IMG/VR virus record: IMGVR_UViG_3300023184_000024
Span: 288,755 to 352,754 of that record
DNA: 64,000 nucleotides
Direction: 5' to 3' (one strand)
Shown: positions 40,258 through 64,000 of the stretch, piece after piece
Layout of the letters: each line of letters starts with the position of its first letter
Numbering within the stretch: position 1 is the first letter of the stretch
Translations under genes and position numbers: made by a program
The notes under the pieces: model-generated
Told to the model about the DNA's origin: nothing
Database searches by the model: none
The model's input: the letters and a program-made list of their open reading frames with translations, nothing else

Positions 40258-41565
40258 CCTAGCCCGGTTGATGTCTATCAACAGTTGAATAAGATCTTGT
40301 TTTGGCTTGCTAGGCCAATCTCCGGTCAAGTATGTGATATTGTCCGGGTTATGGCTCATTAATTTTCTAAACTCAGTCCAGTCGTGTCCAGTTTTGTATT
40401 GACTGCATGACTGTTTTGCAAGTGCAACATTGTCAGTTAGTTCGTTTATTATCAACTCTGCAAATTCTTTACTGAAAAATCTTGATTGATTGTGTCTTGT
40501 TATTGCAGACATGCATTGGCCTAGTTGCATTTTGTCTCGGTCAGACATTGCACTGAGTTCTTTCATTAACTGTAGAATTTTTTCCATCCTAACAACCGGG
40601 TTTGGTTCTTGGTCATAGCTTTCGTCAAAGAAATCACCAAATGTCTGGAATCCATAGCTTTTTAAATATTCTAAACTGCCAGCTGGACCCACCAATATAA
40701 ACGGTTTGTTGCAGGCAATTGGGCGCAGTGTTTTTTCAGTTAAATGTATTCGTTGATCGTCGAACAAGGTTTCAAGTATGACTTCAAACCAACATTGTTT
40801 GTAATCTTTGACACTGTAATCTGCACTTGCATACGACGGGCTTTGATTTTTTGCAATCTGACAGAGATCGTTGTTGGGCTTAAACTCAGGATTGGTAAAC
40901 ACATGGTCAAGGTAGTGTAGGTCCTGGTCCAGTGGTGCAAAGCTTACATTACACGAGTCTGTCAGGTTGTTGTCAATGAGCAAGTCTAGAAATTTCAATC
41001 TATATTCTCTAGTACCAGACCAAGCACGGTTGTAGATGTTAAAATCTTTTTGATAGTTTTCAGCTAGACGTAATAATTGGGCATCATGTTGGGCGTATCT
41101 AAACCAGTCTCTGGCAATGAATGCATGGCTCCACCAATAAACACCTTTGTACCCGTGTTGCTCGTACAATGCTATTTGGTCAGAGTTTTTTTCACTGTGA
41201 CACAGCAGAGTCTGATCATGTATTGTCTGCCCGGCAAACACAAATTTTAAATTTTGCTTGGTAATAAAACTGGTCAATTCTGGAGTCAATGACATATAAG
41301 TTGTAGGCCGATGATATTGATACCATTTTTCAACTGTTTCTTGGGGCAAATTTTCATATAAGTCAAAATTTAACGGCTCTTGATCATACATAATCATCGG
41401 CACAGTTCGTGCTAGATCGCAGGCCAACAGTTTTACAGACTCTTGTTCTAAGCGTTGTAGGTCGGGCACTTTTTTACTGCCATGAGGAAAAAAACAATAA
41501 ATTATAATGTCTTGATCAATTAAATCACCAATGTAGTGATACAACTTATCTAAAGGAATAAACAT
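40246..41565 (-). CDS. GT10-like ('TEK' motif) putative glycosyltransferase
   Basis: ILET..LTEKTLRPI..KPFILVG..GFQTF..DESYD. Confidence 0.55.
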   Translation of the reverse strand: MFIPLDKLYHYIGDLIDQDIIIYCFFPHGSKKVPDLQRLEQESVKLLACDLARTVPMIMYDQEPLNFDLYENLPQETVEKWYQYHRPTTYMSLTPELTSFITKQNLKFVFAGQTIHDQTLLCHSEKNSDQIALYEQHGYKGVYWWSHAFIARDWFRYAQHDAQLLRLAENYQKDFNIYNRAWSGTREYRLKFLDLLIDNNLTDSCNVSFAPLDQDLHYLDHVFTNPEFKPNNDLCQIAKNQSPSYASADYSVKDYKQCWFEVILETLFDDQRIHLTEKTLRPIACNKPFILVGPAGSLEYLKSYGFQTFGDFFDESYDQEPNPVVRMEKILQLMKELSAMSDRDKMQLGQCMSAITRHNQSRFFSKEFAELIINELTDNVALAKQSCSQYKTGHDWTEFRKLMSHNPDNITYLTGDWPSKPKQDLIQLLIDINRARSAD

Positions 41566-42802
41566 GTCGAGTAAAATAGGTTTTATAGGTTTAGGGAAAC
41601 TAGGCCTAGAGTGTGCTGAAGTTTTTGCAGAACACTATGAAGTTTCAGGTTATGATATTTACCCACGCACCAGCGACTCAGTAAAAGTTTGCAACATTGA
41701 GGACGTGGTAGAAAACAGCGATTGGATTTTTATTGCTGTGCCAACACCCCACAGTGAGGGGTACGATGGATCAGTTCCAAGTTCACACATGAAGCCCAAA
41801 GACTTTGGTCATGATGCTGTGATTGATGCAATCAACAAGGTCAATACATTTGCCACTAGTTCTAAAAAAATTGTGCTTATTTCCACAGTTCTTCCTGGCA
41901 CCACACGCAAACATTTTTACTCGTTGTTGGACAAAAAACATCAGTTTTTGTATAACCCGTATTTGATTGCCATGGGGTCAGTGAAATGGGACATGGTCAA
42001 CCCAGAAATGGTCATGATTGGCACCGAAGATGGTGATCAAACAACTTTGGCCAGCGAGCTCATTGAAATTTATAAACCATTGATGAAAAACGATCCAAGG
42101 TATGTTGTGGGCACATGGGACGAATGTGAAGCAATTAAAATTTTCTACAACACCTTTATCAGTGCCAAGGTTGGTCTTGCCAACATGATTCAAGACTTTG
42201 CACTCAAAATTGGCAACATCAATGTTGATGTGGTCACCAATGCATTGGCACAAAGCACCATGCGTATCATGGGCCCAAAGTACATGACCGCTGGCATGGG
42301 CGATGCTGGAGCCTGTCATCCTCGAGATAACATTGCTCTTCGTTGGTTAGCTGAAGAATACAACATTGGTTACGACTTGTTTGATACCATCATGCATGCT
42401 CGTGAAATCCAAGCAAAGAATCTAGCACAATTTTTGGTAAACCAAGCCAGCAACGGGTTGCCAATTGCCATTCACGGCAAAGCATACAAGCCTGACGTTG
42501 AATACTGCATTGGATCTTACTCAACGCTGGTTGGGCACTATGTCAAAGAACTCGGGCACACTGTGGTTTACGTAGATCCATTGGCCGACAATTCAACTGA
42601 TGTTGTTGCTGAGTTAACTGGACCTCATGTGGTGTTGTGGGCACACAATCGCAAAATCACCTATGAGTACACTGGAGATCAACTTGATACACAGCCATAT
42701 TGTGTTATTCCTCAAGGATCGATAATTGTTGACCCATGGCGCAAACTTGGGGACTCTGAGGAACACACAATTATCCACTATGGCAACACACGTGGTCAGT
42801 AA
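41564..42802 (+). CDS. UDP-glucose/GDP-mannose dehydrogenase family protein
   Basis: GLGKLG, AVPTP, STVLPGT, IKIFYNTF, catalytic-region GACHPRD. Confidence 0.9.
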   Translation: MSSKIGFIGLGKLGLECAEVFAEHYEVSGYDIYPRTSDSVKVCNIEDVVENSDWIFIAVPTPHSEGYDGSVPSSHMKPKDFGHDAVIDAINKVNTFATSSKKIVLISTVLPGTTRKHFYSLLDKKHQFLYNPYLIAMGSVKWDMVNPEMVMIGTEDGDQTTLASELIEIYKPLMKNDPRYVVGTWDECEAIKIFYNTFISAKVGLANMIQDFALKIGNINVDVVTNALAQSTMRIMGPKYMTAGMGDAGACHPRDNIALRWLAEEYNIGYDLFDTIMHAREIQAKNLAQFLVNQASNGLPIAIHGKAYKPDVEYCIGSYSTLVGHYVKELGHTVVYVDPLADNSTDVVAELTGPHVVLWAHNRKITYEYTGDQLDTQPYCVIPQGSIIVDPWRKLGDSEEHTIIHYGNTRGQ

Positions 42803-45838: not shown

Positions 45839-46855
45839 ATGATCGCTCGTGTGGGTTTTGCTTGCAAATGGATAAATGATCCCAGCCAAGTTGCTGGCCT
45901 AAAACCCAATGCAGTGGATCGTGACCTCAATGGTCGAAGTACAACCATGCGTTGGTTACGTGAACACAAACTTGAAGCCGAACAACGTCAGTGGGACATT
46001 ATGAATCATAATGCTCGTGCTGCCTTGCTGATGGTAGAACGTGTGGGCAGTTTACCCCTACACCTGCGTATGGTACGCCTGGGCAGTGAAATGTTACAAG
46101 GCTACACTGAGCCAGACTGGAAGGCCTGGTGGCAACGCAGGGAAATTCAAGATCACTGTGCTGACATTTTTGCACCTGTGGGTGCTCGTGCTAGAGAACT
46201 GGGAGTGCGACTGAGTTTCCATCCTGGGCAGTTTTGTGTGTTAGCCAGTGAAAGTGACGAAATTGCAGGGAGAAGCATTGAAGAATTTGAATATCATGCG
46301 GACATGGCACGTTGGATGGGCTACGGCAAAACGTTCCAGGACTTTAAGATCAATGTACATATTTCCGGACGGAAAGGTCCTGCGGGTATTCAAAGTGCCC
46401 TCCAACGGCTCAGCCCCGAAGCAAGAAATTGCATTACTATCGAAAACGATGAGATGTCTTGGGGAATAGACGCCAGTTTAGAATTGGCCAGAGACTGTGC
46501 GCTAGTGCTTGATATCCATCACCATTGGATTAAAACTGGAGAATATATTGAAAACAATGATGACCGTATTAAAAAGATTTGTGATAGCTGGCGTGGTGTT
46601 AGGCCTGTTGTACATTACTCCGTCAGTCGTGAAGATGTACTTGTCGGACATTCCCGATCACAACGCCCCGCTCTTGTTCCGTTAATGGAAACAGGCCACA
46701 AAAAAGGCAAACTTAGAGCACACAGTGATTTTTATTGGAACGATGATGTTAATCGGTGGGCAGCCACGCACAGTGCCTGGGCCGACATCATGTGCGAAAG
46801 CAAAGGCAAGAATCTTGCCAGCCAGGAATTTGCAAAGTACTGTGTACCATCATGA
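45839..46855 (+). CDS. uvsE: UV damage endonuclease
   Basis: GFAC, RLSFHPGQF, IENDE, LDIHHH, HYS, RAHSD, MCESK.K. Confidence 0.92.
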   Translation: MIARVGFACKWINDPSQVAGLKPNAVDRDLNGRSTTMRWLREHKLEAEQRQWDIMNHNARAALLMVERVGSLPLHLRMVRLGSEMLQGYTEPDWKAWWQRREIQDHCADIFAPVGARARELGVRLSFHPGQFCVLASESDEIAGRSIEEFEYHADMARWMGYGKTFQDFKINVHISGRKGPAGIQSALQRLSPEARNCITIENDEMSWGIDASLELARDCALVLDIHHHWIKTGEYIENNDDRIKKICDSWRGVRPVVHYSVSREDVLVGHSRSQRPALVPLMETGHKKGKLRAHSDFYWNDDVNRWAATHSAWADIMCESKGKNLASQEFAKYCVPS

Positions 46856-47175: not shown

Positions 47176-47241
47176 ATACCCACTATTTCTTTTCTCCAAA
47201 ACAAGTAAATATTAAAATAACAACTATAATAGGTGAGCATA

Positions 47242-48645
47242 ATGATAAAAAGAATTGCCCTGAGCTTGATCAGCCTTGCGCTGATAGCGGTAGCCACTGC
47301 ACAAACAACAACCGGAACGTCGGGTACCTCTGGCGGCACAACCACTGGAACTACTACAGTTATTAACCAAGGTAGCTATGATTCCAAATCATTGGTAGAT
47401 ACCAATAGTACTAGTAACAGCGTGAGCACAATTAACACAAACAACGTTAACAGTGGCACTATTACCAACAACAATAACACCAGTTTAACTGGTGGAACAA
47501 CAAATACCAACGTTAACACAAATACCAACAATGGTACAATGACCAACAACAATAACAACAACAACGTTATGAGTGGCAGTGTTACCTATACAAACAACAA
47601 CAACAATGTAAACAGCGGTACTCAAACGTTCAACAACAATAACGTCAACACTGGTACAATGACCAATAATAACAACAATGTCAATACCAGCACCAGTTCG
47701 AGTACTAATGTTAACACCAATAACAATGTCAACAGCGGTACACAAACGTTCAACAATAATAATGCTAGTACATCATCCAGCACAGCAGTTAATACTAATA
47801 ACAATATTAACAGCGGCACAATGACTTACAACAACAACAATGTCAGCTCTAGTACAAGTACCAATACAAATAACAATAACAATGTCAGCACAAGTACCAA
47901 CACAAATTATCAGTATGGTACAATGACCAATAATAACAACAACGTGAATACCAGTACCAGTGCCAACACCAATAACAATGTTAACACAGGTGACATGACC
48001 AACCGTAATATCAACAATACCACTGCTACAACCAGCAACACCAACACCAATGTTAACAGTGGCACAATGACCAACATTAATCAGAATACCAACAATGGTA
48101 CAATGACCAACAACAACAATAACACTAGTACAAGCACCAATGTCAATCAAAATGCCAACGTTAATCAAAACATCAACAGTGGTGAAATGACTAACAAGAA
48201 TATCAACGAAACAACTATCACGCAAAAAGTTATTCAACCTCCACCAACTGCTGTTGCTCCTGCAATGATGAGTGGTGGCAATGCCGATTTATGTAGTACT
48301 GGTACCAGTGGTAGTGTTCAGACTCAAATATTTGGAGTAGGTGCCGGCAGTACCAGTCGTGATATGAATTGTGAACGATTAAAGTTAAGTAAAACTTTGT
48401 ATGATATGGGTATGAAGGTTGCCGCTGTGGCCACAATGTGTCAAGACCGTAGAGTATTTGATGCCATGTTGGCCGCTGGCACACCCTGCCCGTTTGAAGG
48501 CAAGATTGGTGAACAAGCCAAGGCTGCATGGGAATCAAATCCAGAAAAGTTGCCAAAACTTGAAGAGGAAAAACTAGATGACACTTACAAGAAAGTTGGC
48601 TTCGGCGCTTTGCTTGGCGTTCTCATTCATAACGCTTTCAAGTAA
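47242..48645 (+). CDS. Secreted Asn/Thr-repeat protein with Cys-containing C-terminal domain
   Basis: Signal peptide, roughly 260 aa of N/T/S repeats, then a 4-Cys domain (DLC..NCERLK..MCQD..TPCP). Confidence 0.75.
   Translation: MIKRIALSLISLALIAVATAQTTTGTSGTSGGTTTGTTTVINQGSYDSKSLVDTNSTSNSVSTINTNNVNSGTITNNNNTSLTGGTTNTNVNTNTNNGTMTNNNNNNNVMSGSVTYTNNNNNVNSGTQTFNNNNVNTGTMTNNNNNVNTSTSSSTNVNTNNNVNSGTQTFNNNNASTSSSTAVNTNNNINSGTMTYNNNNVSSSTSTNTNNNNNVSTSTNTNYQYGTMTNNNNNVNTSTSANTNNNVNTGDMTNRNINNTTATTSNTNTNVNSGTMTNINQNTNNGTMTNNNNNTSTSTNVNQNANVNQNINSGEMTNKNINETTITQKVIQPPPTAVAPAMMSGGNADLCSTGTSGSVQTQIFGVGAGSTSRDMNCERLKLSKTLYDMGMKVAAVATMCQDRRVFDAMLAAGTPCPFEGKIGEQAKAAWESNPEKLPKLEEEKLDDTYKKVGFGALLGVLIHNAFK
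47400..48200 (+). repeat. Coding low-complexity repeat (NNNN-VNSG-TMT / TQTF units)
   Basis: Recurring AAC/AAT runs and GGTACAATGACCAA copies. Confidence 0.9.
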
Positions 48646-51088
48646 TGCTCAAGTAGATAGTACCACCGGTAATTTAATAAATTACGGTACATCTGCCACG
48701 GATACAACCAGTACTTGGAACAACGGCGTCTACGTTAACCAGCTATGCTTTGCTGCCGGCCAACCAGGAAACTGTGGACCAAACCCTAGTGTTCGTCAAG
48801 GTGGCTATATCAACTTCAGTTACGGCACAGCTGATCTTAATCAAATTGTCAACATAAACCGAGCCCTGGCTGCTGGCGGCACAGGAGTACAACTCAGTGG
48901 ATTTAACTTTGGATTTACAGCAAAGAATGGTAATGGCTGGGACGATGCTAGACAGGATTATCTAGCCGCTTATGTTAAACTATATGGCAGTGGCGGCAAT
49001 TTAGTTGCCAATTATGATTACTCAGCACAGACTAACAGAAAATACAATTGGACTAACTTTAGCTTTAACGAAACATTTGCCAACCCGGCGGCCGCTTCAC
49101 AGTATAGTAACGCACAAGTGGGCTTTGTAGGCAGAGACAATAACTTCTGGGCAGGAAATTATGGTCCTGAAATTTTTAATGTTAGTTTTAGTTTGAAATA
49201 TCGTGTTGATCCTTGTGCTCAGAATCCTGCCTACAGTCCTAGTTGTTCTGGATTTAACACAGTTACAACCAGTAACAATTTGTTTAATTCTAGTGTATGG
49301 GGAAGTTCCGTAAATCAAGCAATTGCCATTAATACCGCATTAAAGAACGGCGGCATTGGTGCCACAGTGCACGGCTTTAACTATGGATTTGATTATACAG
49401 TAGGTGAAAGTTGGTTCGGTTGTACAGCTACCAATCAAGATGGATCTTGTAGTTGGTATATGAATATTCCTGCTCAAGTAAGTGCCACAGCACGACTTAC
49501 CAACAGTAGCAATCAAACAATATATTCAAAAGGTCATACATTAACCGGTGACGGCACCAGCGGATCGGTGAGTGGGCAGTATTTGTTGACAACCAGTTTG
49601 AATCAAACATCCTTGGGCAATGTCAGCTTAACGGGTAGTACTTCGGGTACCGGATCATCCATTGGTAATTTTTCAGCAAGTTTGATTTATACTGCTGACC
49701 CTTGTGTGTCTAACCCATTGTACAATGCATCTTGTTCAGGATATGCCGTTGCTTTTGCTAAAAATATGTTATTGGGCTCGACAGTTGCCAGTGCGTCTGG
49801 TCCTATAGTGGCTTCGAGTGGTTCAATAAGTTTGTCAACAACATCAACAGGTTCGTTAGAACCAGCACCAACATCGGGACCAACAGAACAAAGCGGACCA
49901 ACACAACCCCAACAAACATCCGGACCTGCCCCAAATCCCACACAAGATTCGGGTCAAACTACAGCACAATCGGATCCTGCACAACCAAGTCCAACACAAG
50001 CAGGTCCTGCTCCCACAAGTCCGCAACCTGCCGGCGGGCCTCCGCAGACTGCAACAGCAAGTGCGCCAAATTCATCTGGACCTAGTGGAGGAGGCTCAGC
50101 AGGTCCAAGTAAATTAGCAATGAGTGTGGTTAAAACAGCACAGGCAAATGACAAAGCTACGCAAAATGCCGCAGTACAGAATGCCGCTAAAACTCTAGAA
50201 GGTTCAATACAAAGTTCGCAAGCCGCTAGTAATGCCGCAATTAGCATGAATCAAGATATGAGTGCTAACAGTGCTGTTGCAGCCGCAAACTTTGCTGGCC
50301 AAACAACACAGGCTAGTCAGCAAACTGCTATACAAGCAACTCAACAAACATCACAGTCTAATGTGCAACAGACGCAACAAAGTTCTAGGGTAACACAGCA
50401 AGTACAGCAACAACACGATGTACAAGTATCAATGATTCAATCAACTAACGGAGTTTCACAAATTCAACAGTTTATATATACTCCTCCGGTACAGCAACAA
50501 ACTGATACACTGTCTGCACAGATTAGTATGTTAAAACCACCCGCTCCACTGGTCATTGAAATGCAACAACAAACTAGTGGCGGCACTGGTTTAACTGTTA
50601 GTCGCAACTTGTTTGCTTACAATCCATTAATGTCATCAAATACTGCCAATATGTCAGCACTATTGCCTGCTCCTCAACCTGTGTATCAACCTAGATTAGA
50701 TACTAGACAAAGTGAAGTGGAAACGCCACAAATGCCGATTGCCAGTTTTGGCGGTGCAGGCCGTGCCGGTAATCCGTTGTCAGAAATACTGATGCAACAA
50801 AAATTTGAAATCATGCAGGATAATATAGCGCAACCGGGCAGTTTGGTGAATAGAAATGCGCTACCAAATGAGCTGGCAGGTGGCATTGATATTGCTAGTA
50901 TAGCCAGTGTGCCCCAGGGATTTAATGCTTATTCATTTGTGTTAAAAGATGCGTCGTTCTATGAGCCAAAAGAAGTTTATAAAAATCAACGCACAGTTGA
51001 CAATGAACGAGTGTTGCGAGGATTGACCAGAGGTAGTGACAGCTTACATCAACGCATGGTTGATCAACAGTATAAGATAGGAAATTAA
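48578..51088 (+). CDS. Large secreted protein: two tandem beta domains plus Pro/Gln-rich regions
   Basis: Signal peptide; duplicated Q.x.IN.AL..GG.G..GFN.GF and DPC..NP.Y..SCSG motifs. Confidence 0.7.
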   Translation: MTLTRKLASALCLAFSFITLSSNAQVDSTTGNLINYGTSATDTTSTWNNGVYVNQLCFAAGQPGNCGPNPSVRQGGYINFSYGTADLNQIVNINRALAAGGTGVQLSGFNFGFTAKNGNGWDDARQDYLAAYVKLYGSGGNLVANYDYSAQTNRKYNWTNFSFNETFANPAAASQYSNAQVGFVGRDNNFWAGNYGPEIFNVSFSLKYRVDPCAQNPAYSPSCSGFNTVTTSNNLFNSSVWGSSVNQAIAINTALKNGGIGATVHGFNYGFDYTVGESWFGCTATNQDGSCSWYMNIPAQVSATARLTNSSNQTIYSKGHTLTGDGTSGSVSGQYLLTTSLNQTSLGNVSLTGSTSGTGSSIGNFSASLIYTADPCVSNPLYNASCSGYAVAFAKNMLLGSTVASASGPIVASSGSISLSTTSTGSLEPAPTSGPTEQSGPTQPQQTSGPAPNPTQDSGQTTAQSDPAQPSPTQAGPAPTSPQPAGGPPQTATASAPNSSGPSGGGSAGPSKLAMSVVKTAQANDKATQNAAVQNAAKTLEGSIQSSQAASNAAISMNQDMSANSAVAAANFAGQTTQASQQTAIQATQQTSQSNVQQTQQSSRVTQQVQQQHDVQVSMIQSTNGVSQIQQFIYTPPVQQQTDTLSAQISMLKPPAPLVIEMQQQTSGGTGLTVSRNLFAYNPLMSSNTANMSALLPAPQPVYQPRLDTRQSEVETPQMPIASFGGAGRAGNPLSEILMQQKFEIMQDNIAQPGSLVNRNALPNELAGGIDIASIASVPQGFNAYSFVLKDASFYEPKEVYKNQRTVDNERVLRGLTRGSDSLHQRMVDQQYKIGN

Positions 51089-51913: not shown

Positions 51914-52594
51914 TTATTGTTTGAGAACAGACCGTACCAGGCTGTCTATGCTGTTGATCAACGGAACATTTTTATAATGTGTTTCTTTGACAGCCAACGG
52001 TATCTCTGTACAGCCTAGTACTACGGCATCGACGCCCCAGGGAATTAACTGATCAATTGTGTTTAATAGCAGATCGTGTGCTTCATCAATCTGGCCTGAC
52101 TTAACAAGATCTATCGCGGGTTGTACAACGTTGTCCATTTGATGTGTGTCGGGCGTGATACATTTCCATCCTGACTTGCCCAAGTAGTCCTGGTATAATC
52201 CCAAACTCATTGTGGCTTTTGTGCCTATTATTCCAACGGTGCCACTGTATATTTTTAATGCTGTTAATTCTTCTGCCACACTGCCCACAATGTGTGTGAT
52301 TGGCACGCCAAGTTGGCTCAACCTGTCAAACCAAAAATGTGCTGTATTGCATGGGATTACAATATGGTCACACCCTGCATTTTTTAAACCCAATACGCCA
52401 GCTTTGAGTTTGGCCCAGGGGAGATCATCTCTATTAATTAAACTGGTACTACGATCTGGCACAGTGGGGTCATTCCACAACACAAAAGGTATGTGTTCTT
52501 GATCGCAAGTGGCCGGAGTTTGTTGAATTAATCTTGTGACAAACTCTGCTGATGCTGCCGGCCCCATGCCACCTAGGATGCCTAGACGTTTCAT
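51914..52594 (-). CDS. Aspartate/glutamate racemase (RacX-like)
   Basis: LGILGGMGP, IPCNTAH, LGCTEIP (both catalytic Cys present). Confidence 0.93.
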   Translation of the reverse strand: MKRLGILGGMGPAASAEFVTRLIQQTPATCDQEHIPFVLWNDPTVPDRSTSLINRDDLPWAKLKAGVLGLKNAGCDHIVIPCNTAHFWFDRLSQLGVPITHIVGSVAEELTALKIYSGTVGIIGTKATMSLGLYQDYLGKSGWKCITPDTHQMDNVVQPAIDLVKSGQIDEAHDLLLNTIDQLIPWGVDAVVLGCTEIPLAVKETHYKNVPLINSIDSLVRSVLKQ

Positions 52595-53196
52595 TTTTTA
52601 TTGAATAACAAGCTGGAAGCAATGCCCATTGCGGTCTGCATCTCTTCTACGTTGTCTGGTTGCTCTTTCCAGCCCACACTAATTTGTCCGATGAATACGC
52701 CAGGTTCAGCGGGTACACTGATACGGCACATATAGTTTATACCATAGTCTTTGTACACAAAGCCAATGAGACTCTGCGGTTTAAGATATGGACTGCAGGG
52801 AATCTTACCTGACATTAAACCAATAACGTCATTGTTGTTATTGTAGTCTTTGGAAAACAATCCAACTTGCAGGCCGTCGTGATTCTTATCTCTTCCTGCA
52901 CCACGTGTGACCAAATAAACAACTTTACGAGTGTTGATTAATGTGTTTACTTCTAGAATGGCAATCATTTCTGCATTGGTATTCTTCAACAAAAAGTTTG
53001 CGGCTTCTTCGTACTTGCCATTCATCCTGGGCAAAGCTTGTTGAGCACGATAAGTTGCCAAAAAGGCATCTTTTTCAGTGTAAACAATCCAGCCGCCAAA
53101 CCCTAATATGCAAAGTAACACAACCGCAAACAAGCGGAATGGACTGGAACCAATCCATTCCAACAGCGTTAACAGTGTAGCTTTAAGTTGTTCCAC
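52591..53196 (-). CDS. T4 gpT-like holin (single TM plus periplasmic GAF-like domain)
   Basis: RLFAVVLL..KDAFLATY, INYM..FIGQISVGW and A..LL C-terminus parallel T4 T as I recall it. Confidence 0.6.
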   Translation of the reverse strand: MEQLKATLLTLLEWIGSSPFRLFAVVLLCILGFGGWIVYTEKDAFLATYRAQQALPRMNGKYEEAANFLLKNTNAEMIAILEVNTLINTRKVVYLVTRGAGRDKNHDGLQVGLFSKDYNNNNDVIGLMSGKIPCSPYLKPQSLIGFVYKDYGINYMCRISVPAEPGVFIGQISVGWKEQPDNVEEMQTAMGIASSLLFNKK

Positions 53197-54460
53197 CAGC
53201 GGCTACCTCTTTGTCACAGACAAATGCTGTGACTGCTACGTTGCCGTGTACATGACTTGCTGTGCGAATCATATCCATTAATGGATCAACTGCGATCAAC
53301 AATACTAACACCGCTTCGCTGGGCAGTTTCAACAAGTCACAAACAACTGCCACTGTGGCCACTGTAAGGATACCTGTTGTGCCTGCACTGGCTAAACCAG
53401 CAAGGATACTGCCTAATAGTACAACCAACAATCCTGTAACACCCAGTGGTGCGTCATAGATGTTGGCAATGAATACTGTGGCAATGGCGTAGTAAACAAT
53501 GCTGCCAATACGGTTAACAGTAAAACTCAGTGGAACTGTAAGTTCAACTCCGCCTTTGTCAAAGTGTAGTTTGTGTAACGCCTCTTGTGCATATGGAATG
53601 CAAGCTAAACTACTACGTGAACTAACAGCAACAATTAATGTTTCTTTGGTTTCTTTAATAACAGTAGCAAGACTTAATCCGCTACGTGCCCAAATTACAG
53701 CAGTACCTGCGGCAATAACCAAGAAGCCACCGATAGCTTGTTGCATTACAAAGTCAAACATGGTCATAAAAATACCAACACCTACTTTACCAACCTGTGA
53801 CGAAATCATTGCTAATAGTGCTATTGGTAGGAAGTAGTTTAGGAATTTAAAGATACTGATACTGGCTTGCTGGACACTCTTTAGTACTTCAACCAACATG
53901 CGCTGACCTTCAGTCTTTAAGTGACCAAGGGCTACACCAAAGATCAAACAGAAGATAACAATCTTCAAACTTTCACCATTGTTTAGTGTGTTGAAGATAT
54001 TTTCTGGAATAAACTTCTCTGCCATTTTACCTGCATTAACTGGTGCGGCTGTTGGCATTGGTTCTTTAAGAGTAATGTTTAAATCAGTGCCACTGTCTTT
54101 ATCGTTGACCAATACACCAAGTTGTGTTTTCTTCTCAGGGGTCATTTCAGTGCCAGTGATCAAAACTGTACCTACTCCAATTGTAGCGGCAATAAACATA
54201 CTGCTGACAAAGCCAATGATGATTCTACGAATTAACGCCTGACTGCCTTCTTTTTGTAGCAAGCCAATAATACCAACTAGAATAGTAGCAAGTAAGAATG
54301 GTAGTACAACTACCTTTAATAAACTAATATAGATACTGCCAATGCTGTCCAGTCCAATACTAAATGCTGGAGCATAAACTCCGCTTAGTATACCTACAAT
54401 AATTGATCCTAAGATGGTCCAAGGACTTGTCAGGAAACTTTTTAAATGTGATGTTGTCAT
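53183..54460 (-). CDS. Dicarboxylate/amino acid:cation symporter (DAACS family)
   Basis: IPENIF, SSRSS, LASAG, D.LMDMIRT; multi-TM. Confidence 0.9.
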   Translation of the reverse strand: MTTSHLKSFLTSPWTILGSIIVGILSGVYAPAFSIGLDSIGSIYISLLKVVVLPFLLATILVGIIGLLQKEGSQALIRRIIIGFVSSMFIAATIGVGTVLITGTEMTPEKKTQLGVLVNDKDSGTDLNITLKEPMPTAAPVNAGKMAEKFIPENIFNTLNNGESLKIVIFCLIFGVALGHLKTEGQRMLVEVLKSVQQASISIFKFLNYFLPIALLAMISSQVGKVGVGIFMTMFDFVMQQAIGGFLVIAAGTAVIWARSGLSLATVIKETKETLIVAVSSRSSLACIPYAQEALHKLHFDKGGVELTVPLSFTVNRIGSIVYYAIATVFIANIYDAPLGVTGLLVVLLGSILAGLASAGTTGILTVATVAVVCDLLKLPSEAVLVLLIAVDPLMDMIRTASHVHGNVAVTAFVCDKEVAAGGTT

Positions 54461-54469
54461 GATGTGTCC

Positions 54470-55288
54470 TTATTTCTTTTCTGCTTTGTAACGATCCATT
54501 AACTTTTTAGTGTCAATATTATTGTATTCATTTTTAATAACGTAATTAACAATGCTTAACAATTGAATTGCTCGGGGATTCACAGCAATAGCAATGTTAT
54601 CTACGCTGTCGCTGATTGTAATTGACTTAGTAGTAATTGCCGCGTCGGGCTTTTCAAAAGCAATTTTCTTGATTTCAAATTCATCACGGTAAGCGGCAGC
54701 AATGTCGCCACGTGTGACTTTGTCAATGATCACATCCCATTTTTCTTCAGGAAGGAATACTGCGTTGGGAAAGTTTACACGAGCAAATGTATCGTAACTT
54801 GAGTTCTTGATAAAACTTATCTTGCCATTAAAATCTCTAATGACTTGGTATACTTCACGTCCTTGGCTGTTCTGACTTAGCCACAAACGATTAATAACCA
54901 AACTCTGTCTTAGTTTAATGTAAGGATCGCTGAATCTAACAACTTGTAAACGTGGCCCAGTTACGGATAGTTTACTAACTGCAATATCTGCTTTACCGTC
55001 ACGAACCTGTTCTACAACTTCAGCAAAACTTTCAGCATCGCGTCTGAACTGCACTGGCACTCCGAGTAGGACACTAATTCGTCGAGCAATCTCAACGTCG
55101 AGACCTCGAATATTATCCTCGTCACCACTGAAGAATGGAGGATTGTCTTTTTTGGTCATTGCCACAACAAGCACATTGGCTTTTTTGATTGCGGCAATAT
55201 CTGCGGGCAGAGGTACGGTTGACGTTGGTAACTGTGCAGACGCAACAGAGGCCAACAACATTAGTACAGAGGCGAGTAATTTTTTCAT
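54470..55288 (-). CDS. Periplasmic amino-acid binding protein (SBP family 3)
   Basis: Signal peptide MKKLLA.., DNPPF, GLDVEIA, ADIAVS.LSVT..R..FSDPY. Confidence 0.88.
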   Translation of the reverse strand: MKKLLASVLMLLASVASAQLPTSTVPLPADIAAIKKANVLVVAMTKKDNPPFFSGDEDNIRGLDVEIARRISVLLGVPVQFRRDAESFAEVVEQVRDGKADIAVSKLSVTGPRLQVVRFSDPYIKLRQSLVINRLWLSQNSQGREVYQVIRDFNGKISFIKNSSYDTFARVNFPNAVFLPEEKWDVIIDKVTRGDIAAAYRDEFEIKKIAFEKPDAAITTKSITISDSVDNIAIAVNPRAIQLLSIVNYVIKNEYNNIDTKKLMDRYKAEKK

Positions 55289-55349
55289 TTGTATGTGTCC
55301 ATAATGTAGGTATTTAATACCCAATGTTATTTATGTTTTTAGATGTTAC

Positions 55350-55378
55350 AAAAAAAAGTCCCTTGCGGGACTCTTTTT
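55350..55378 (-). terminator. Rho-independent terminator (possibly bidirectional)
   Basis: On the - strand AGTCCC-GCAA-GGGACT followed by a T run. Confidence 0.8.
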
Positions 55379-55653: not shown

Positions 55654-56688
55654 CTAACTTGCAGTATCGAGCGTAGATTTAATATCTGCAATCATGCGGG
55701 CCACCCAAGCTGTTTTCATTGTTAGATCATAGTTGTGTTCAACAATGGGCTGACACAGTTGATAAATCTTGGCTTGTTCTTGTGTCTGCAAATATGCAAC
55801 TTGCTCTAACATCAATTTTACCCTGACCGATATATCGGGCTCCGAGTCGTAACTTTCATCAATGATGCCATGAAATGTTTGAAATCCAAGCTTTCTTAAA
55901 TTATGCAGATAGTATTGCCCACCGGCAACCACAAACAATCTACGACACATCATTGGTTTTATAATTTTTTCAGTAAAAAAACTAAAACTATTTTCACTTT
56001 GTGTTTCGGCAATTAAACTGTAGGCGCTGTGATTATAAACATCAATTGGCACCAATTGACTTAGACTAACAATGGTAGAATCTACCACAACTTCGGAACC
56101 TGTAAATGTAATTTCATTTTCAGGCAAATCAACAGGCCAAATGAATTGGCTCGACGAGTAATTTCTAAGATCAAGATCCACGTTGGTTGGATAATAAGTT
56201 ACTATGTTCTGACTGTGGTCCATTGAGTCATAAACCATTGATCTATGCACCTTGCGCCGGCCCAACAAAACATCAAAGAATTTGTCCTTGGGCAACACGT
56301 TGCTGACTTTGGGCAACCAATTTTGCTGTGTGTGATAAAAATCAGTGGTGCTCCAAAAGAAATAATAATGAAACTTGACCTGACTATGCCCGGGAGTCCA
56401 ATTTAAAATGCCGGCAATGTAAAAAACTACGTTTGGCCTATCAAATTTTTTGCACCAATGATCGTCGATGAATTCGGGCAAGAACACCAAGGCCTTGCTG
56501 GCATGCGACACTATTTTTTCCAGTTCAGATTCAGTGTCATTGCCAAAGTCTTGTGTTTCCCACAAAGCAACACACTCATTGCTGGGCAATGACAACCAAA
56601 CGTCAAGATCATTGACTATGTTGCCATCAACGCCGGTTTCTTCAAACCAGTATTGTAGATTTGGATTGCTGATATAAATGTGTTTCAC
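55654..56688 (-). CDS. GT10-like ('TEK' motif) putative glycosyltransferase
   Basis: IAET..FTEKIIKP..GFQTF..DESYD. Confidence 0.55.
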   Translation of the reverse strand: MKHIYISNPNLQYWFEETGVDGNIVNDLDVWLSLPSNECVALWETQDFGNDTESELEKIVSHASKALVFLPEFIDDHWCKKFDRPNVVFYIAGILNWTPGHSQVKFHYYFFWSTTDFYHTQQNWLPKVSNVLPKDKFFDVLLGRRKVHRSMVYDSMDHSQNIVTYYPTNVDLDLRNYSSSQFIWPVDLPENEITFTGSEVVVDSTIVSLSQLVPIDVYNHSAYSLIAETQSENSFSFFTEKIIKPMMCRRLFVVAGGQYYLHNLRKLGFQTFHGIIDESYDSEPDISVRVKLMLEQVAYLQTQEQAKIYQLCQPIVEHNYDLTMKTAWVARMIADIKSTLDTAS

Positions 56689-56751
56689 AGTGTATTTACT
56701 GCTGGTCGTTATAGTAAGTGTAAATCAACAACAACGGGTGCTAACTACATA

Positions 56752-57459
56752 ATGATTGAATTTATAACAATGTTGGTAATGACACACATTACCATTCTAT
56801 GTGTCACATTGTATCTGCATCGTAGCCAAGCTCACAAGTCAGTTACGTTCCATCCAATTGTTGCACACGCCATGAGATTTTGGCTATGGATGACTACCGG
56901 ACAAATTACCCGACAATGGGTAGCGGTACATCGCAAGCATCACAGATTCACAGAAGTACACGGTGATCCACACAGCCCGCATGTGTTTGGTTTTTGGCAT
57001 GTGCTGTGCAAAGGTGCTGTGCTGTATCATACTGCCAGTAAAGACTCGGCAATGGTGGCACAATATGGTGCTGGCACACCCGATGACTGGATTGAACGCA
57101 ATGTTTATTCCAAGCATAGTAGACTGGGCATTGCGTCAATGCTGTTGATCAATATAGCTGTGTTTGGTGCATGGGGACTACTAATATGGGGCATACAAAT
57201 GATATGGATCCCATTCTGGGCCGCCGGTGTCATCAATGGAGTGGGACATTGGCTGGGGTACCGCAATGGCGAAACCAAAGACCACAGTCAAAATATCAGT
57301 CCCTGGGGTATCGTTATTGGCGGAGAAGAACTACACAACAATCACCACATTAACCCTGCCAGCCCCAAATTGAGTAGCAAGTGGTGGGAGTTTGATATAG
57401 GATGGGCGTGGATACGTGTGCTAGAGATGGTCAAGTTGGCCAAGGTGCGCACAGTTTAG
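56752..57459 (+). CDS. Fatty acid (acyl-CoA/lipid) desaturase, DesA-like
   Basis: His boxes HRSQAH, HRKHH and HNNHH; DPHSP. Confidence 0.93.
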   Translation: MIEFITMLVMTHITILCVTLYLHRSQAHKSVTFHPIVAHAMRFWLWMTTGQITRQWVAVHRKHHRFTEVHGDPHSPHVFGFWHVLCKGAVLYHTASKDSAMVAQYGAGTPDDWIERNVYSKHSRLGIASMLLINIAVFGAWGLLIWGIQMIWIPFWAAGVINGVGHWLGYRNGETKDHSQNISPWGIVIGGEELHNNHHINPASPKLSSKWWEFDIGWAWIRVLEMVKLAKVRTV

Positions 57460-59938: not shown

Positions 59939-60517
59939 ATGACACAAAGCAAGGACACTGAGGAAGATTACGTAAGCCCGGGACAAAGCCTGCTGGAAGC
60001 AGGCATGTATACACTCATGGGACCCATTGACGATGAGCTAGTGAAGCCTGTGATCGAGTGGATTTTACATGCCAATCATGTTGTTAAAAGAAAGAAAAAA
60101 GAACTTTTATTAATGATATGTAGTGAAGGTGGTGACATGAGCTCGGCATTTGCATTAATTGATGTCATGCAAAGTTCAGGCATACCTATTAAAACAGTGG
60201 GACTTGGTCAAATTGCATCGGCTGGACTGTTGATCTTTTTGGCTGGTACCCCGGGCCGCAGGACCTTGACTCCCAACACCAGTATATTAAGTCATCAATT
60301 TAGCTGGGGTAGTGACGGCAAAGTGCATGAGTTATTTGCTACCATGAAAGAGTTTGAATTAACTCAAAAGCGCATGATAGCGCACTATGTTCGATGCACC
60401 AATCTCAGCGAAGATCAAATACGTAAAAATCTATTGCCGCCACATGATGTTTGGCTTGACGCAAAAGAAGCATTGAAGCTCAACATCTGCGATCATATCA
60501 GTTTGGTAAATCGTTAA
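59939..60517 (+). CDS. clpP: ClpP-like protease subunit
   Basis: ICSEGG, GQIASAG (Ser), ILSHQ (His), DVWLDAKEAL..CD. Confidence 0.85.
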   Translation: MTQSKDTEEDYVSPGQSLLEAGMYTLMGPIDDELVKPVIEWILHANHVVKRKKKELLLMICSEGGDMSSAFALIDVMQSSGIPIKTVGLGQIASAGLLIFLAGTPGRRTLTPNTSILSHQFSWGSDGKVHELFATMKEFELTQKRMIAHYVRCTNLSEDQIRKNLLPPHDVWLDAKEALKLNICDHISLVNR

Positions 60518-62110: not shown

Positions 62111-63091
62111 ATGATTACTATTCGAGTAAATGTGTGCGGAGACCACTGGATAAACCCCGAAGAAGTTCAAGCCCAACTTGACACAGCAGATGCTTTAGAA
62201 CCTGTTGTATTCAACTTTGGTGCCGAAGGTCCTAGCTTGGCGGCAATTGGGCTAATGGACATGATCAACGCCCACTGCAACACCACTGGCAGAAGTTTGA
62301 CATCTCTGCATGTTGTTGCATGGCCGAACACCGCAGAAAAGTTGCAGGTAGGCTCTGTTGAGTTGTGCAAAATCAGTCATTTTTTTAGCAAAAGCGATGT
62401 GTATCGCAGAGACCAATTTTTACCATCCACACACGAACATCTGTTTGGATGTTTTATAGGCCGGCGTACCATAGCTCGTGGCGTGATCTTGTATGACCTA
62501 TGGAAACACCACAAACAACACACATTGTTGAGTTGCATGTACAACAGAAATATAAATGTATGGGAAAAAAGCAAAGGTAAAAATCTAGAAAGTCTAGACC
62601 AATGGGTGCCAACAGACCAGCAGGCTGACTTTGTTGATTGGTGGAAAAGTTGCCCAGTGTCCAGTATTGATCAACATTCTGTAGCCGATCAATACAGAGA
62701 TGGACAAAACACAAACCTTGATCTTCTAGCGCACTATCATAAATTTGACATAGAGATTGTCTGCGAAACATATACTCTGGGAGAAACTTTTTTCCCCACA
62801 GAAAAAACAATTCGGCCAATAATGGGCAAAAAACCTTGGTTAATTTATGGCCCTGAAAACTATTTGCGCAGACTACAAGAACTTGGATTTCAAACATTTG
62901 ACACACTGTGGAGTGAAGAATACGATCAGTTTTCCGGCCCTGTAAGATGGCAGTACATTCAACAAGTTATACAAAATCTAACCAACTTGTCCACAGCAGA
63001 TCGTTGTGCCCTGCTGGACAAAGCCAGCTTGATCACTGAACACAATTGGAAAGTGCTGGAAGACCTTGCTAGAAAACACAGTACAAAATGA
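62111..63091 (+). CDS. GT10-like ('TEK' motif) putative glycosyltransferase
   Basis: VCET..PTEKTIRPI..KPWLIYG..GFQTF..EEYD. Confidence 0.55.
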   Translation: MITIRVNVCGDHWINPEEVQAQLDTADALEPVVFNFGAEGPSLAAIGLMDMINAHCNTTGRSLTSLHVVAWPNTAEKLQVGSVELCKISHFFSKSDVYRRDQFLPSTHEHLFGCFIGRRTIARGVILYDLWKHHKQHTLLSCMYNRNINVWEKSKGKNLESLDQWVPTDQQADFVDWWKSCPVSSIDQHSVADQYRDGQNTNLDLLAHYHKFDIEIVCETYTLGETFFPTEKTIRPIMGKKPWLIYGPENYLRRLQELGFQTFDTLWSEEYDQFSGPVRWQYIQQVIQNLTNLSTADRCALLDKASLITEHNWKVLEDLARKHSTK

Positions 63092-64000
63092 TATTAAAAG
63101 TATTTGATCATGGGTGGGGCAACGATGTACCACTCAAACAGTTTGAAAAATCACTGACCGACCAGTATCTGGCTCCGCTGGTCACCGACGATAAAAATCA
63201 TGTAATCATTAACAGTGTGTGGTACACTGACAATGCGCATAAACAAGTCATGGCATATCTAAGAACACACAAAGTTGACAGCATAGTGCTGATTGCCATG
63301 TTGGATGCTGCCATTCCTTATGCACCACGATATCAAGAGTTGGCACACTTGGTGAACGAAGTTGGGTATTACCGGGGAAAAAATTTCATAGATTTCTGGG
63401 CACTAATGGTAGACCGTTATTTTGACCAGCCGGGCCCCGAGGCGTTATTACCCACACAGCAAATGACGCTGCCGTTTATGTGTTTGAATCGTAAGCCACA
63501 TTGGCACAGAAAGAAACTCTATGTAGAATTAGAATCTCGCGGCTTGCTGGACCACGGGCTTGTTAGTTTTGGTGGAGACAACAACAACCCGGTTAGAGTA
63601 CTAGCCACCGATCAAGGCCAAAGTTTGCTTGCCCCAAACCCCGGAGCAGACCAACATGGTATATGCAATGACATTGCCAGTCTTGGACACCCAGATAACT
63701 GGCAACGCTGTTTTTTAAATGTAGTAACAGAAACCGTGTTTGACATTAATATCAATTATTTTGTCAGCGAAAAAATATACAAACCCATAATTGGCCAACG
63801 TCCTTTTTTGGTCTACGACACAGACGGGGCAACGCAATGGTTGACCGATCGCGGGTTTCAATCATATGTCAATGACTTCACAGACATATCTGATCTTGAT
63901 TTAACTAATCCAGACAACATTGCACCATTTCTACTGGTGTTATCTCAGCAAAATACCAGCTACTATTACCAAAAGTATCTTGCTCTCAGCGAAAAAATTA
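63088..64000 (+). CDS. GT10-like ('SEK' motif) putative glycosyltransferase, 3'-truncated by the window edge
   Basis: ATGA-coupled ORF MILKVFDHGW.., open to the window end; CLNRKPH, VTETVF..VSEKIYKPI..RPFLVY. Confidence 0.6.
   Translation, partial: MILKVFDHGWGNDVPLKQFEKSLTDQYLAPLVTDDKNHVIINSVWYTDNAHKQVMAYLRTHKVDSIVLIAMLDAAIPYAPRYQELAHLVNEVGYYRGKNFIDFWALMVDRYFDQPGPEALLPTQQMTLPFMCLNRKPHWHRKKLYVELESRGLLDHGLVSFGGDNNNPVRVLATDQGQSLLAPNPGADQHGICNDIASLGHPDNWQRCFLNVVTETVFDININYFVSEKIYKPIIGQRPFLVYDTDGATQWLTDRGFQSYVNDFTDISDLDLTNPDNIAPFLLVLSQQNTSYYYQKYLALSEKI

Follow-up and report, generated by a model that had tools for sequence, protein, structure and literature searches.

We analysed a window of 64,000 nucleotides (positions 288,755 to 352,754 of IMG/VR record IMGVR_UViG_3300023184_000024), in which a gene of the glutamate-transporter family lies within a four-gene cassette on the minus strand. 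The order of the cassette is SBP_bac_3, SDF, a 201-aa membrane protein, and a CuyB/Asp-type racemase. The coordinates of the features are collected in Table 1.

Table 1. Features of the transporter cassette, in window coordinates.
Feature	Position	Strand	Length	Description
Hairpin	55345..55372	-		GTCCC-GCAA-GGGAC followed by a T-run; by pattern match only, looks like a terminator for the upstream 80-aa gene and marks the 5' boundary of the cassette
SBP	54470..55285	-	271 aa	Periplasmic solute-binding protein, SBP_bac_3 family; ATG at 55285 (the longest ORF starts at a TTG at 55324)
SDF (P0001)	53183..54460	-	425 aa	DAACS/SDF transporter of the Arg-variant subfamily; ATG start
TM7 loop	53501..53515	-		Unwound loop of P0001, NRIGS (NMDGT in GltPh)
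TM8 motif	53240..53275	-		DMIRTASHVHGN in P0001
Membrane protein	52591..53196	-	201 aa	One N-terminal TM helix and a domain of about 160 aa with a predicted GAF-like, holin-T-like fold; start overlaps the SDF stop by 14 nt, stop overlaps the racemase start by 4 nt
Racemase	51914..52594	-	226 aa	PLP-independent Asp/Glu-type racemase; both catalytic Cys motifs (PCNTAH, GCTE) present

To establish the genomic context, we examined the whole record. The results showed that it is a complete T4-like jumbo phage genome from lake water, of 352,754 bp, with a 127-bp direct terminal repeat, 95% coding density, a Gp23 major capsid protein (E 1.4e-99) and a large terminase subunit (TerL). We identified 76 related viral contigs, some of 331-349 kb, and at least 56 of them keep the gene order of the cassette. 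A search of 50,697 deposited phage records returned no close homologue; all hits were under 26% identity, and most were bacterial contigs filed as phage. All four cassette proteins hit only PHROGs families of unknown function, and no RNA run, examined as assembled contigs, contained the cassette. The only hint of a host was a 3-kb contig binned with an alphaproteobacterial MAG, which is weak evidence.

We then assigned the transporter to its family. P0001 matched Pfam SDF (PF00375, TC 2.A.23) over residues 14-414 at E 5e-65, with 220 bits against a cut-off of 27.9. The AF2 model (pLDDT 84, pTM 0.84) showed the GltPh architecture of eight TM helices with both re-entrant hairpins, HP1 and HP2, and helix breaks at 282-284, 316-317 and 358-363, so that TM7 is broken exactly at N316-R317. 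Foldseek matched this model to GltPh, GltTk and AncInt at E about 1e-13, with a TM-score of up to 0.79.

To identify which functional residues are retained, we aligned P0001 to GltPh chains using phmmer. The results showed that N310 (N316 in P0001), G313 (G319), D390 (D392), D394 (D396), R397 (R399), T398 (T400) and R276 (R282) are kept, while M311 is replaced by R317, D312 by I318, T314 by S320, N401 by H403, D405 by N407 and S279 by L285. The acidic-amino-acid site (R276, D394, R397 and T398) is therefore present, and its residues are conserved in 66-71 of 72 SBP-linked homologues, except R282, which is Ser in most cyanobacterial members. In contrast, the side-chain ligands of Na1 and Na3 (D405, D312, N401) are gone. 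Of the Na+ ligands at T92/S93, S86 and S87 are kept in the window, but position 86 is Ala or Gly in most of the phage clade. Of the signature of proton-coupled members (T92 hydrophobic, M311L, D405N, S279E; PMC12668577), only D405N is present.

We next investigated whether these substitutions are conserved. Among 121 homologues of 76-95% identity, the motifs were essentially invariant, with NR[IV]GS in 120 and DMIRTASHV[HYQ]GN in 121, and dN/dS against five related phages was 0.04-0.09. A pattern search missed the motifs in distant representatives, and alignment columns were therefore used. Of 136 cluster representatives, 109 had Arg at M311, none had an acid at D312, one had an acid at D405, and none had Glu or Asp at S279; D390, D394, R397 and T398 were kept. 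The substitutions define a large cellular subfamily. R317 was present in 71 of 72 SBP-linked homologues and was kept even in members that lack R399 (21 representatives), which argues for a structural or cation-like role rather than substrate pairing. H405 (P0001 numbering) was His in 53 of the 72 homologues.

These results confirm the observation of the sequence-only reading, which had reported the NRIGS and DMIRTASHVHGN motifs, the retention of D394, R397 and T398, and the replacement of M311, D312, N401 and D405. However, its list of lost residues overstated the case. Alignment with characterised ion-coupled members showed that D405N, M311 to L and T314 to S are normal in proton-coupled E. 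coli GltP and DctA (PMC12668577), so that the unusual features are M311R, the loss of D312, N401H and the absence of the S279E proton signature. That reading also did not recognise that the gene is phage-borne, lies on the minus strand and belongs to a four-gene cassette.

To investigate the linkage between the transporter and the SBP, we examined 67 cellular loci and the viral loci. A dedicated, co-oriented SBP gene lay directly upstream in 66 of the 67 cellular loci and in essentially all complete viral loci, and every viral locus whose upstream flank is present also has it. These SBPs scored 240-480 bits against the family-specific HMM, compared with 35-39 bits for unrelated SBPs in locus L066. 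Five natural fusions were found in both orders, two SBP-SDF (P0236 and P0237) and three SDF-SBP (P0184, P0195 and P0209). The SBP is the only one in the phage, and no ABC permease was found in the phage or among recurrent neighbours of the module. The repeated scan of genome contigs used a single peptide pattern, so the taxonomic spread it returned (mostly cyanobacteria) is biased. A complex prediction of the SBP with the carrier scored 0.59, but one control scored 0.41, and we did not count it for or against binding. E382 was considered as a family-specific docking residue and was rejected, because E. coli GltP has the same Glu.

The SBP itself matched Pfam PF00497 at E 2.7e-17 and amino-acid SBPs in the PDB at E 1e-14. 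It has a type I signal peptide ending ASA|Q and no lipobox, and signal peptides are present in all phage copies. The amino-acid-binding S..T..R and R-D motifs, including the alpha-carboxylate Arg and the alpha-amino Asp, are kept, and S89, R94 and D183 were invariant or nearly so in 81 homologues.

The racemase matched Pfam PF01177 at E 5e-41. It scored 213 bits against the NCBIfam CuyB cysteate racemase model (cut-off 190) and 161 bits against asp_race. Relatives scored 215-240 against the CuyB model, but the cyanobacterial racemases of the module scored 145-180, below the cut-off. A racemase was present in 49 of the 67 cellular loci and in at least 56 viral loci, although the SBP-SDF pair persists in phage lineages without an adjacent racemase (loci L007, L135 and L144). 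To test for cysteate catabolism, we searched the phage genome for a D-cysteate sulfo-lyase (CuyA, PALP fold) and found no PF00291 match; the only PALP neighbour in the cellular loci was a threonine synthase, in 4 loci. Of aspartate-consuming enzymes, no asparagine synthase and no adenylosuccinate synthase were found in the phage.

The 201-aa protein is phage-specific and is present in about 70 viral loci. It had no Pfam match. Its AF2 model (pLDDT 87) was matched by Foldseek to the periplasmic domain of T4 holin T (6psk_T, TMt 0.65) and to GAF domains, and an Atlas feature hit led to a cluster partly annotated PF11031. Pfam holin T (PF11031) did not match anywhere in the genome, indicating that the holin reading rests only on fold and embedding similarity.

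A different partner was found in many cellular relatives. A dCache-HAMP(-cyclase or kinase) gene lay directly after the SDF in 40 of the 67 cellular loci, and three SDF-dCache-Guanylate_cyc fusions were identified (P0158, P0211 and P0221). In two Proteobacteria, Litoricola and a Burkholderiaceae MAG, the module lay inside T6SS loci. Neither the window nor any of the 76 viral loci encodes a dCache partner, and the phage clade grouped with proteobacterial-type sbp-sdf-rac loci, which lack dCache.

Taken together, our best reading, held with moderate confidence, is that P0001 is the membrane subunit of a two-component, binding-protein-dependent secondary transporter of the DAACS (GltPh/EAAT) fold, probably representing an undescribed branch of this family, which a T4-like jumbo phage of freshwater bacteria carries as an auxiliary uptake cassette. 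In this view, the secreted SBP would capture an aspartate-sized acidic alpha-amino acid in the periplasm, with aspartate or cysteate, in either the L- or D-form, as candidates, and would hand it to the intact substrate site of the carrier (R282, D396, R399, T400) without use of the three canonical Na+ sites or the known H+ signature, which are inferred to be absent. We propose that Arg317, in the unwound TM7 loop where M311 lies next to substrate and Na2, acts as a tethered positive charge that would hold the loop and the HP2 gate in the substrate-competent state without bound Na+. In the cytoplasm, the two-Cys racemase would interconvert the enantiomers so that the host could use the imported compound. 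Net uptake of an anion cannot be driven by uniport, so we expect either a non-canonical proton site, for which His405 and His403 are candidates, or exchange. The fold, motifs, conservation, gene linkage, fusions and viral context rest directly on the analysis, whereas SBP docking and SBP-dependent transport, the identity of the substrate, the role of Arg317, the direction of transport and the energy coupling are inferred, without biochemical data for any member of this subfamily.

Several findings weigh against this reading. Na+ sites are partly built from backbone carbonyls, so sequence alone cannot prove that no ion binds. An uncoupled carrier would move an anionic amino acid outward in an energised cell, so import needs a coupling that we could not identify, and a racemase cannot trap aspartate against the cell's own L-Asp pool. 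No D-cysteate sulfo-lyase (CuyA/PALP) is present in the phage or among the conserved neighbours of the module. In most cellular relatives, the ties to dCache-HAMP-cyclase or kinase proteins, and in two cases the T6SS context, point to signalling rather than nutrition. The gene between the transporter and the racemase looks like a holin and not a transport component.

The interpretation of the sequence-only reading is thus partly supported. Its proposal that the protein is not a canonical Na+ symporter is supported at the sequence level, and binding-protein dependence is strongly supported by context. An ordinary H+- or Na+-coupled symporter, using sites that sequence comparison does not reveal and with the SBP as an affinity-enhancing accessory or unrelated neighbour, remains possible but doubtful. 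GltP and DctA share some of the substitutions, SstT (NMAGA) and TcyP (GQNGC) also lack D312 yet are annotated as cation symporters, and His405 could carry a proton. However, no characterised member examined here has Arg at 311, none of the 136 representatives carries S279E, and the SBP adjacency together with five fusions is far beyond coincidence. A decaying passenger gene, suggested by the loss of motifs that are usually essential, is refuted by the intact reading frame in more than 120 homologues, the invariant motifs, the low dN/dS and the conservation of the same motifs across phyla.

The transceptor proposal, in which the SBP-SDF pair reports a periplasmic amino acid to a partner protein, has support for the cellular relatives only and is unlikely for the phage. 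There, the partner could be a host sensor or the holin-T-like protein, whose gene start overlaps the SDF stop and which would link the signal to lysis timing. Loss of coupling residues is expected for a carrier turned receptor, and DctA-DcuS and DctB-DctA-DctS provide precedents (PMC6978683), although DctA in those units is still a working transporter. The substrate site and both gating hairpins are conserved, apart from the R282 and R399 exceptions noted above, and the cytoplasmic racemase implies that the ligand crosses the membrane. The exporter proposal is neither supported nor excluded, and we consider it similarly unlikely. The racemase would make D-Asp or a related D-acid from the large internal L-pool, and the uncoupled carrier would let the anion leave down the membrane potential, as we infer from thermodynamics, or swap it for the external L-form; AncInt behaves as a cation-independent exchanger (PMC12668577), and the racemase-SDF linkage is conserved. 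Against this, a dedicated high-affinity periplasmic SBP, fused to the carrier in some species, is the hallmark of import systems and has no known role in export, and the pair persists in phage lineages without an adjacent racemase. A more speculative and improbable possibility is a D-amino-acid signalling circuit, in which the racemase makes the signal, the carrier releases or re-imports it and the SBP reads it. The signal would pass to the dCache-cyclase or kinase or to T6SS control in bacteria, and to the translationally coupled holin-T-like protein in the phage, which would then time lysis according to an extracellular amino-acid cue, analogous to lysis inhibition or phage communication systems.

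If the SBP-SDF pair is a working unit, DAACS would join TRAP, TTT and TAXI-GltS as another elevator-type carrier family that has recruited a binding protein, and would be the first to use an ABC-type class SBP_bac_3 protein. Literature searches found no relevant paper on SBP-linked DAACS or on DAACS in phages, within the collection searched. The conserved Arg sits in the N-M-D loop, the hub of Na+ and substrate coupling in glutamate transporters, and offers a natural experiment on how a coupling ion can be replaced by a protein side chain, a question that ancestral reconstruction has just made active. For phage biology, a complete transporter with binding protein, carrier and enzyme, carried by a widespread clade of lake jumbo phages, extends the idea of auxiliary metabolic genes to secondary active uptake of amino acids. 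The family is also large and uncharacterised in cyanobacteria, where it is wired to cAMP/cGMP signalling.

Finally, we compared the system with its closest known counterparts. The AncInt/ExtInt clade of bacterial glutamate-transporter homologues (Reddy et al., Nat Struct Mol Biol 2025, PMC12668577; PDB 9BGY, 9BGZ, 9BH0) shares the DAACS fold, and AncInt is the best PDB sequence hit of P0001 (96 bits) and the top Foldseek hit. AncInt binds and exchanges aspartate without Na+ or H+, and its extant relatives lack the coupling signatures and tend to sit next to amino-acid-modifying enzymes. However, AncInt keeps the N-M-D loop and its Na+ ligands, its uncoupling being allosteric, whereas the family of P0001 has Arg in place of M311 and a hydrophobic residue in place of D312, is only about 22-24% identical to AncInt, and has a dedicated SBP, which the paper does not report for ExtInt. 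Proton-coupled GltP and DctA of E. coli (and GltT of Geobacillus) share the SDF family, Asn at D405, a non-Met residue at 311, Ser at 314 (GltP) and conserved D394/R397/T398 in GltP, but they keep D312 (N-L-D-G), N401 and the S279E Glu, have Leu at 311 and have no dedicated SBP. P0001 scored 103-111 bits against these NCBIfam models, against cut-offs of 513-638.

SBPs are recurrently recruited by elevator-type secondary carriers (PMC12344293). TRAP (DctPQM), TTT (TctABC) and the TAXI-GltS system likewise pair such a carrier with a periplasmic SBP, with tight gene linkage and occasional SBP-carrier fusions, which is exactly the kind of evidence used to propose TAXI-GltS. Here, the membrane protein is a DAACS and not DctQM, TctAB or GltS, the SBP is an SBP_bac_3 and not DctP, TAXI or TctC, and the known systems are Na+- or H+-driven. 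In the transporter/sensor units DctA-DcuS (E. coli) and DctB-DctA-DctS (B. subtilis), a DAACS carrier, in Bacillus together with a binding protein, works with a membrane sensor that has a PAS/Cache-type periplasmic domain (PMC6978683), resembling the SBP-SDF-dCache arrangement of the cellular relatives. However, DctA is a canonical proton symporter for C4-dicarboxylates, the sensor is a histidine kinase never fused to the carrier, and the phage cassette has no such sensor. The cysteate cluster of Bilophila wadsworthia contains an SDF transporter, CuyB racemase, CuyA sulfo-lyase and RidA (PMC11193023), and thus also pairs an SDF carrier with a CuyB-type racemase; the paper mentions no SBP. Phage-encoded nutrient-uptake genes such as cyanophage PstS also provide a periplasmic binding protein for nutrient capture during infection, but here the phage brings the membrane carrier as well, and usually a cytoplasmic enzyme.

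We first examined whether the carrier gene is a genuine member of the sodium:dicarboxylate symporter family with altered motifs. The encoded protein (P0001, 425 aa) is a full-length member, matching Pfam PF00375 at 220 bits over residues 14-414. NCBIfam models for DctA, GltP and SstT matched only at 54-111 bits against cut-offs of 308-638, indicating that P0001 is not an orthologue of any named transporter. A phmmer alignment to GltPh chains showed that N310-M311-D312-G313-T314 of GltPh corresponds to N316-R317-I318-G319-S320 of P0001, D390 to D392, D394 to D396, R397 to R399, T398 to T400, N401 to H403, D405 to N407, R276-S277-S278-S279 to R282-S283-S284-L285, and Y89, T92 and S93 to G83, S86 and S87. 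We then built an AlphaFold2 model on 72 homologues (pLDDT 84, pTM 0.84). The predicted structure has the canonical architecture, with TM7 broken exactly at N316-R317 and the hairpin tips at 282-284 and 358-363, and a Foldseek search returned AncInt, GltPh and GltTk at E about 1e-13, with TM-score up to 0.79. The sequence-only reading had described a TM7 motif NRIGS in place of NMDGT and an altered TM8 motif with the substrate residues kept; both motifs translate as written, and the observation is confirmed.

To assess whether the substitutions reflect drift, we searched for related sequences. A word search found 272 relatives, of which the best 120 are 76-95% identical. Among them, the TM7 motif is NR[IV]GS in 120 of 121 and the TM8 motif is DMIRTASHV[H/Y/Q]GN in all. 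Against five related phages, dN/dS is 0.04-0.09 for the carrier and 0.05-0.08 for the neighbouring binding protein. These are rough values because dS is near saturation, but the constraint is clearly strong. In contrast to the carrier, the racemase encoded in the same cassette is far more diverged between the window and its nearest relative, locus L086 (dN 0.30, compared with 0.044 for the adjacent carrier), suggesting allele replacement or recombination inside the cassette.

The window is the last 64 kb of a virus record of 352,754 bp with a 127-bp terminal repeat, 42% G+C and about 412 ORFs at 95% coding density. The genome encodes a T4-type major capsid protein (PF07068, E 1.4e-99) and a large terminase subunit, TerL, and it is therefore a T4-like jumbo phage. 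Sequencing runs that hold the cassette are lake and freshwater metagenomes from 13 studies, none of which is RNA. Downstream of a terminator-like hairpin, four genes follow on the minus strand with overlapping or nearly abutting ends. The racemase scored 213 bits on NCBIfam CuyB (cut-off 190) and 161 bits on asp_race. A scan of IMG/VR returned 76 loci at 69-95% identity, several from contigs of 331-349 kb. The order sbp-sdf-201aa-rac is kept in at least 56 of them, and the remainder are mostly cut by contig ends. A few lineages keep sbp-sdf, with or without the 201-aa gene, but lack an adjacent racemase, namely the lineages of loci L135 and L144 and the L007 type, in which the pair sits among T4 AGT, DNA methylase, dCMP deaminase and ThyA. 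One viral contig of 524,565 bp (IMGVR_UViG_3300027749_002876; loci L116 and L154) holds two copies of the cassette about 195 kb apart and may be a concatemer or a chimeric assembly of two related phages. No deposited phage genome has a close homologue. A contig of 2,980 bp binned into an alphaproteobacterial MAG from Lac Pavin (JAPLOJ010000301.1; locus L016) carries the phage-type carrier (92% identity, apparently frameshifted) and the 201-aa gene, but it is probably a mis-binned phage fragment and at best a weak host hint.

Coordinates of the cassette, of other features in the window and of related loci (L handles denote loci recovered in the viral and cellular scans)
Sequence	Coordinates	Strand	Feature
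Window	55345-55372	-	Terminator-like hairpin
Window	54470-55285	-	SBP_bac_3 binding protein with a type I signal peptide
Window	53183-54460	-	Carrier (P0001)
Window	52591-53196	-	201-aa single-pass membrane protein
Window	51914-52594	-	PLP-independent racemase with both catalytic Cys motifs
L086	6867-7553		Racemase of the nearest relative
Window	40246-41565(-), 55654-56688(-), 62111-63091(+), 63088-63999(+)		Four paralogous ORFs sharing a C-terminal motif
Window	47233-48645	+	470-aa protein, extremely rich in Asn, Thr and Ser, with a signal peptide
Window	48578-51088	+	836-aa protein, rich in Ser, Thr, Gln and Pro, without a Pfam match
Window	41564-42802, 45839-46855, 56680-57459, 59939-60517		Accessory genes: UDP-glucose/GDP-mannose dehydrogenase-like gene, UvdE UV endonuclease, fatty-acid desaturase, ClpP protease
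L051, L061	L051:3796-12059, L061:1-12065		sbp-sdf-racemase module inside a type VI secretion locus
L015, L061, L066	L015:7084-8388, L061:7829-9415, L066:7221-8618		Second SDF paralogue following the racemase
L017-L084	about 7300-8900 in most cyanobacterial loci		dCache_1-HAMP protein of about 490 aa

Other genes in the region include two large secreted or low-complexity proteins, several accessory genes and four paralogous ORFs that share a C-terminal motif of the form (T/S)EK..(R/K)P(I/M)....(P/L)(F/W)...G......L...GFQ(T/S)(F/Y). The three of these ORFs scanned against Pfam (all but 63088-63999) had no match. They may be an expanded phage family, perhaps sugar-modifying enzymes.

To determine how widely the substitutions occur, we performed an exhaustive search of cluster representatives, which found 314 clusters at E below 1e-30, all at 27-43% identity and thus far closer than any solved or named DAACS. 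In an alignment of 136 full-length representatives, the position of M311 is Arg in 109, D312 is never acidic (F, Y, I, L, V), D405 is acidic once, S279 is never Glu or Asp, D394 is Asp in 102, R397 is Arg in 88, and T398 is Thr in 109. In the 72 sequences with known context, R317 is present in 71, D392 in 72, D396 in 66, R399 in 71 and T400 in 70, while the N401 equivalent is replaced in 68. The results showed that the substitutions define a large cellular subfamily. R317 is also kept in 21 representatives that lack R399, indicating that its role is not simply to pair with an acidic substrate. His405 (GltPh T403) is His in 53 of 72.

We next aligned E. coli GltP, DctA, SstT and TcyP. GltP and DctA read N-L-D-G and end TM8 with G-N, and both have Glu at S279, which matches the published proton-coupled signature of a hydrophobic residue at T92, M311L, D405N and S279E (PMC12668577). 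D405N, the loss of Met311 and Ser at 314 are therefore ordinary, and SstT (N-M-A-G) and TcyP (G-Q-N-G) also lack D312. However, Arg at 311 occurs in none of the four proteins, and neither does the combined loss of D312, N401 and D405 without the S279E Glu. The sequence-only reading had named the presence of the same substitutions in characterised ion-coupled members as a result that would count against it, and this holds for part of its list of replaced residues and not for the rest.

To investigate whether the binding protein belongs to the carrier, we scanned one genome per species, which returned 70 cellular loci, and scored them with HMMs built from the phage and first-found modules. The results showed that 66 of 67 loci with a complete carrier have an SBP gene immediately upstream on the same strand, scoring 240-290 bits, while unrelated SBPs in the same loci scored 35-39 bits. 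All three relatives picked independently from the representative search showed the same arrangement. Five representatives are natural fusions, in both orders, as SBP-SDF (P0236, P0237) and SDF-SBP (P0184, P0195, P0209). No ABC permease or ATPase was found among the recurrent neighbours, and the phage has one SBP and no permease. The SBP keeps the Ser/Thr/Arg triad and the Arg-Asp pair that bind the alpha-carboxylate and alpha-amino groups in amino-acid SBPs.

A CuyB/Asp-type racemase lies in 49 of 67 cellular loci, upstream in cyanobacteria and downstream elsewhere, as in the phage. The proteobacterial, deltaproteobacterial and phage racemases pass the CuyB cut-off, while the cyanobacterial ones do not. 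No CuyA sulfo-lyase was found to accompany the module, and cysteate is therefore a candidate substrate, not a conclusion. The commonest downstream neighbour, in 40 loci, is a dCache_1-HAMP protein, often with an adenylate/guanylate cyclase or histidine-kinase output, and three representatives fuse SDF, dCache and cyclase in one chain. In Nodosilinea, Leptolyngbya and relatives, a version of about 490 aa with no recognisable output domain directly follows the carrier, while versions of 680-720 aa in Planktothrix, Thiotrichaceae and Spirochaetota carry a cyclase domain. In a Litoricola MAG and a Burkholderiaceae MAG, the module lies between a PAAR-like DUF4280 gene and TssK/TssL (VasE, DotU). 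Some loci carry a second Arg-variant paralogue that keeps the TM7 Arg but has lost the TM8 substrate residues (D394, R397), and this paralogue may be a degenerate subunit of a hetero-oligomer. A quick maximum-likelihood tree placed the phage clade as monophyletic (SH-aLRT 95), within the group of loci with the sbp-sdf-rac order and no dCache (L012, L013, L015, L051, L061, L066) and apart from the cyanobacterial dCache-linked clade, although the branches are long and support is moderate.

We also examined the 201-aa protein encoded between the carrier and the racemase. It has one TM helix and no Pfam match, is highly conserved (76% mean column identity, with two invariant Cys) and is single-copy. 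Its structural model (pLDDT 87) matched GAF domains and the periplasmic domain of T4 holin T (6psk_T, TMt 0.65). A language-model search found a viral cluster in which 12% of members carry PF11031 (score 0.97), and the genome has no other holin-T match. The stop of the carrier gene overlaps its start by 14 nt. The protein may be the T-type holin of this phage rather than a transport component.

Taken together, the sequence and context analyses establish an intact acidic-amino-acid site, the absence of canonical Na+ ligand side chains and H+ signature residues, a conserved Arg in the unwound TM7 loop, an SBP partner that appears obligatory from gene context, a frequent racemase partner, and strong purifying selection in phages that encode no sensor partner. 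What we infer from these, without biochemical support, is that the SBP delivers an aspartate-sized acidic amino acid to the carrier, that transport depends on it, that Arg317 supplies the positive charge that Na+ provides in GltPh, and that the racemase makes the imported enantiomer usable. In GltPh, M311 contacts substrate and the Na2 site, and Na+ binding flips the N-M-D loop into the high-affinity state (PMC12668577). The inference in the sequence-only reading, that the protein is not a canonical Na+ symporter and may be a binding-protein-dependent transporter, an exporter or a transceptor, is thus partly supported.

We consider import the best reading, but hold it to be only about as likely as not. 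Phage lineages keep SBP-SDF without the racemase and without any dCache protein, which argues that the pair is a self-sufficient unit. A stand-alone sensor input would be useless to the phage. The main weakness of the importer reading is energetic, because uniport of an anion is opposed by the membrane potential and a racemase cannot trap aspartate, so either a non-canonical proton site exists, with His405 and His403 as candidates, or the system exchanges. A signalling role is possible but unlikely, an exporter or exchanger is slightly less likely still, an ordinary symporter with cryptic coupling is doubtful, and a relic is very improbable.

Membership of the DAACS family is known, whereas the Arg-variant, SBP-linked subfamily and its presence in jumbo phages appear undescribed in the searchable literature. 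The linkage evidence is of the same kind that led to the proposal of the TAXI-GltS class, before which, as the authors of that work note, only TRAP and TTT carriers were known to use soluble SBPs (PMC12344293). The closest published concept is the uncoupled ExtInt/AncInt clade, which has no reported SBP and keeps the N-M-D loop.
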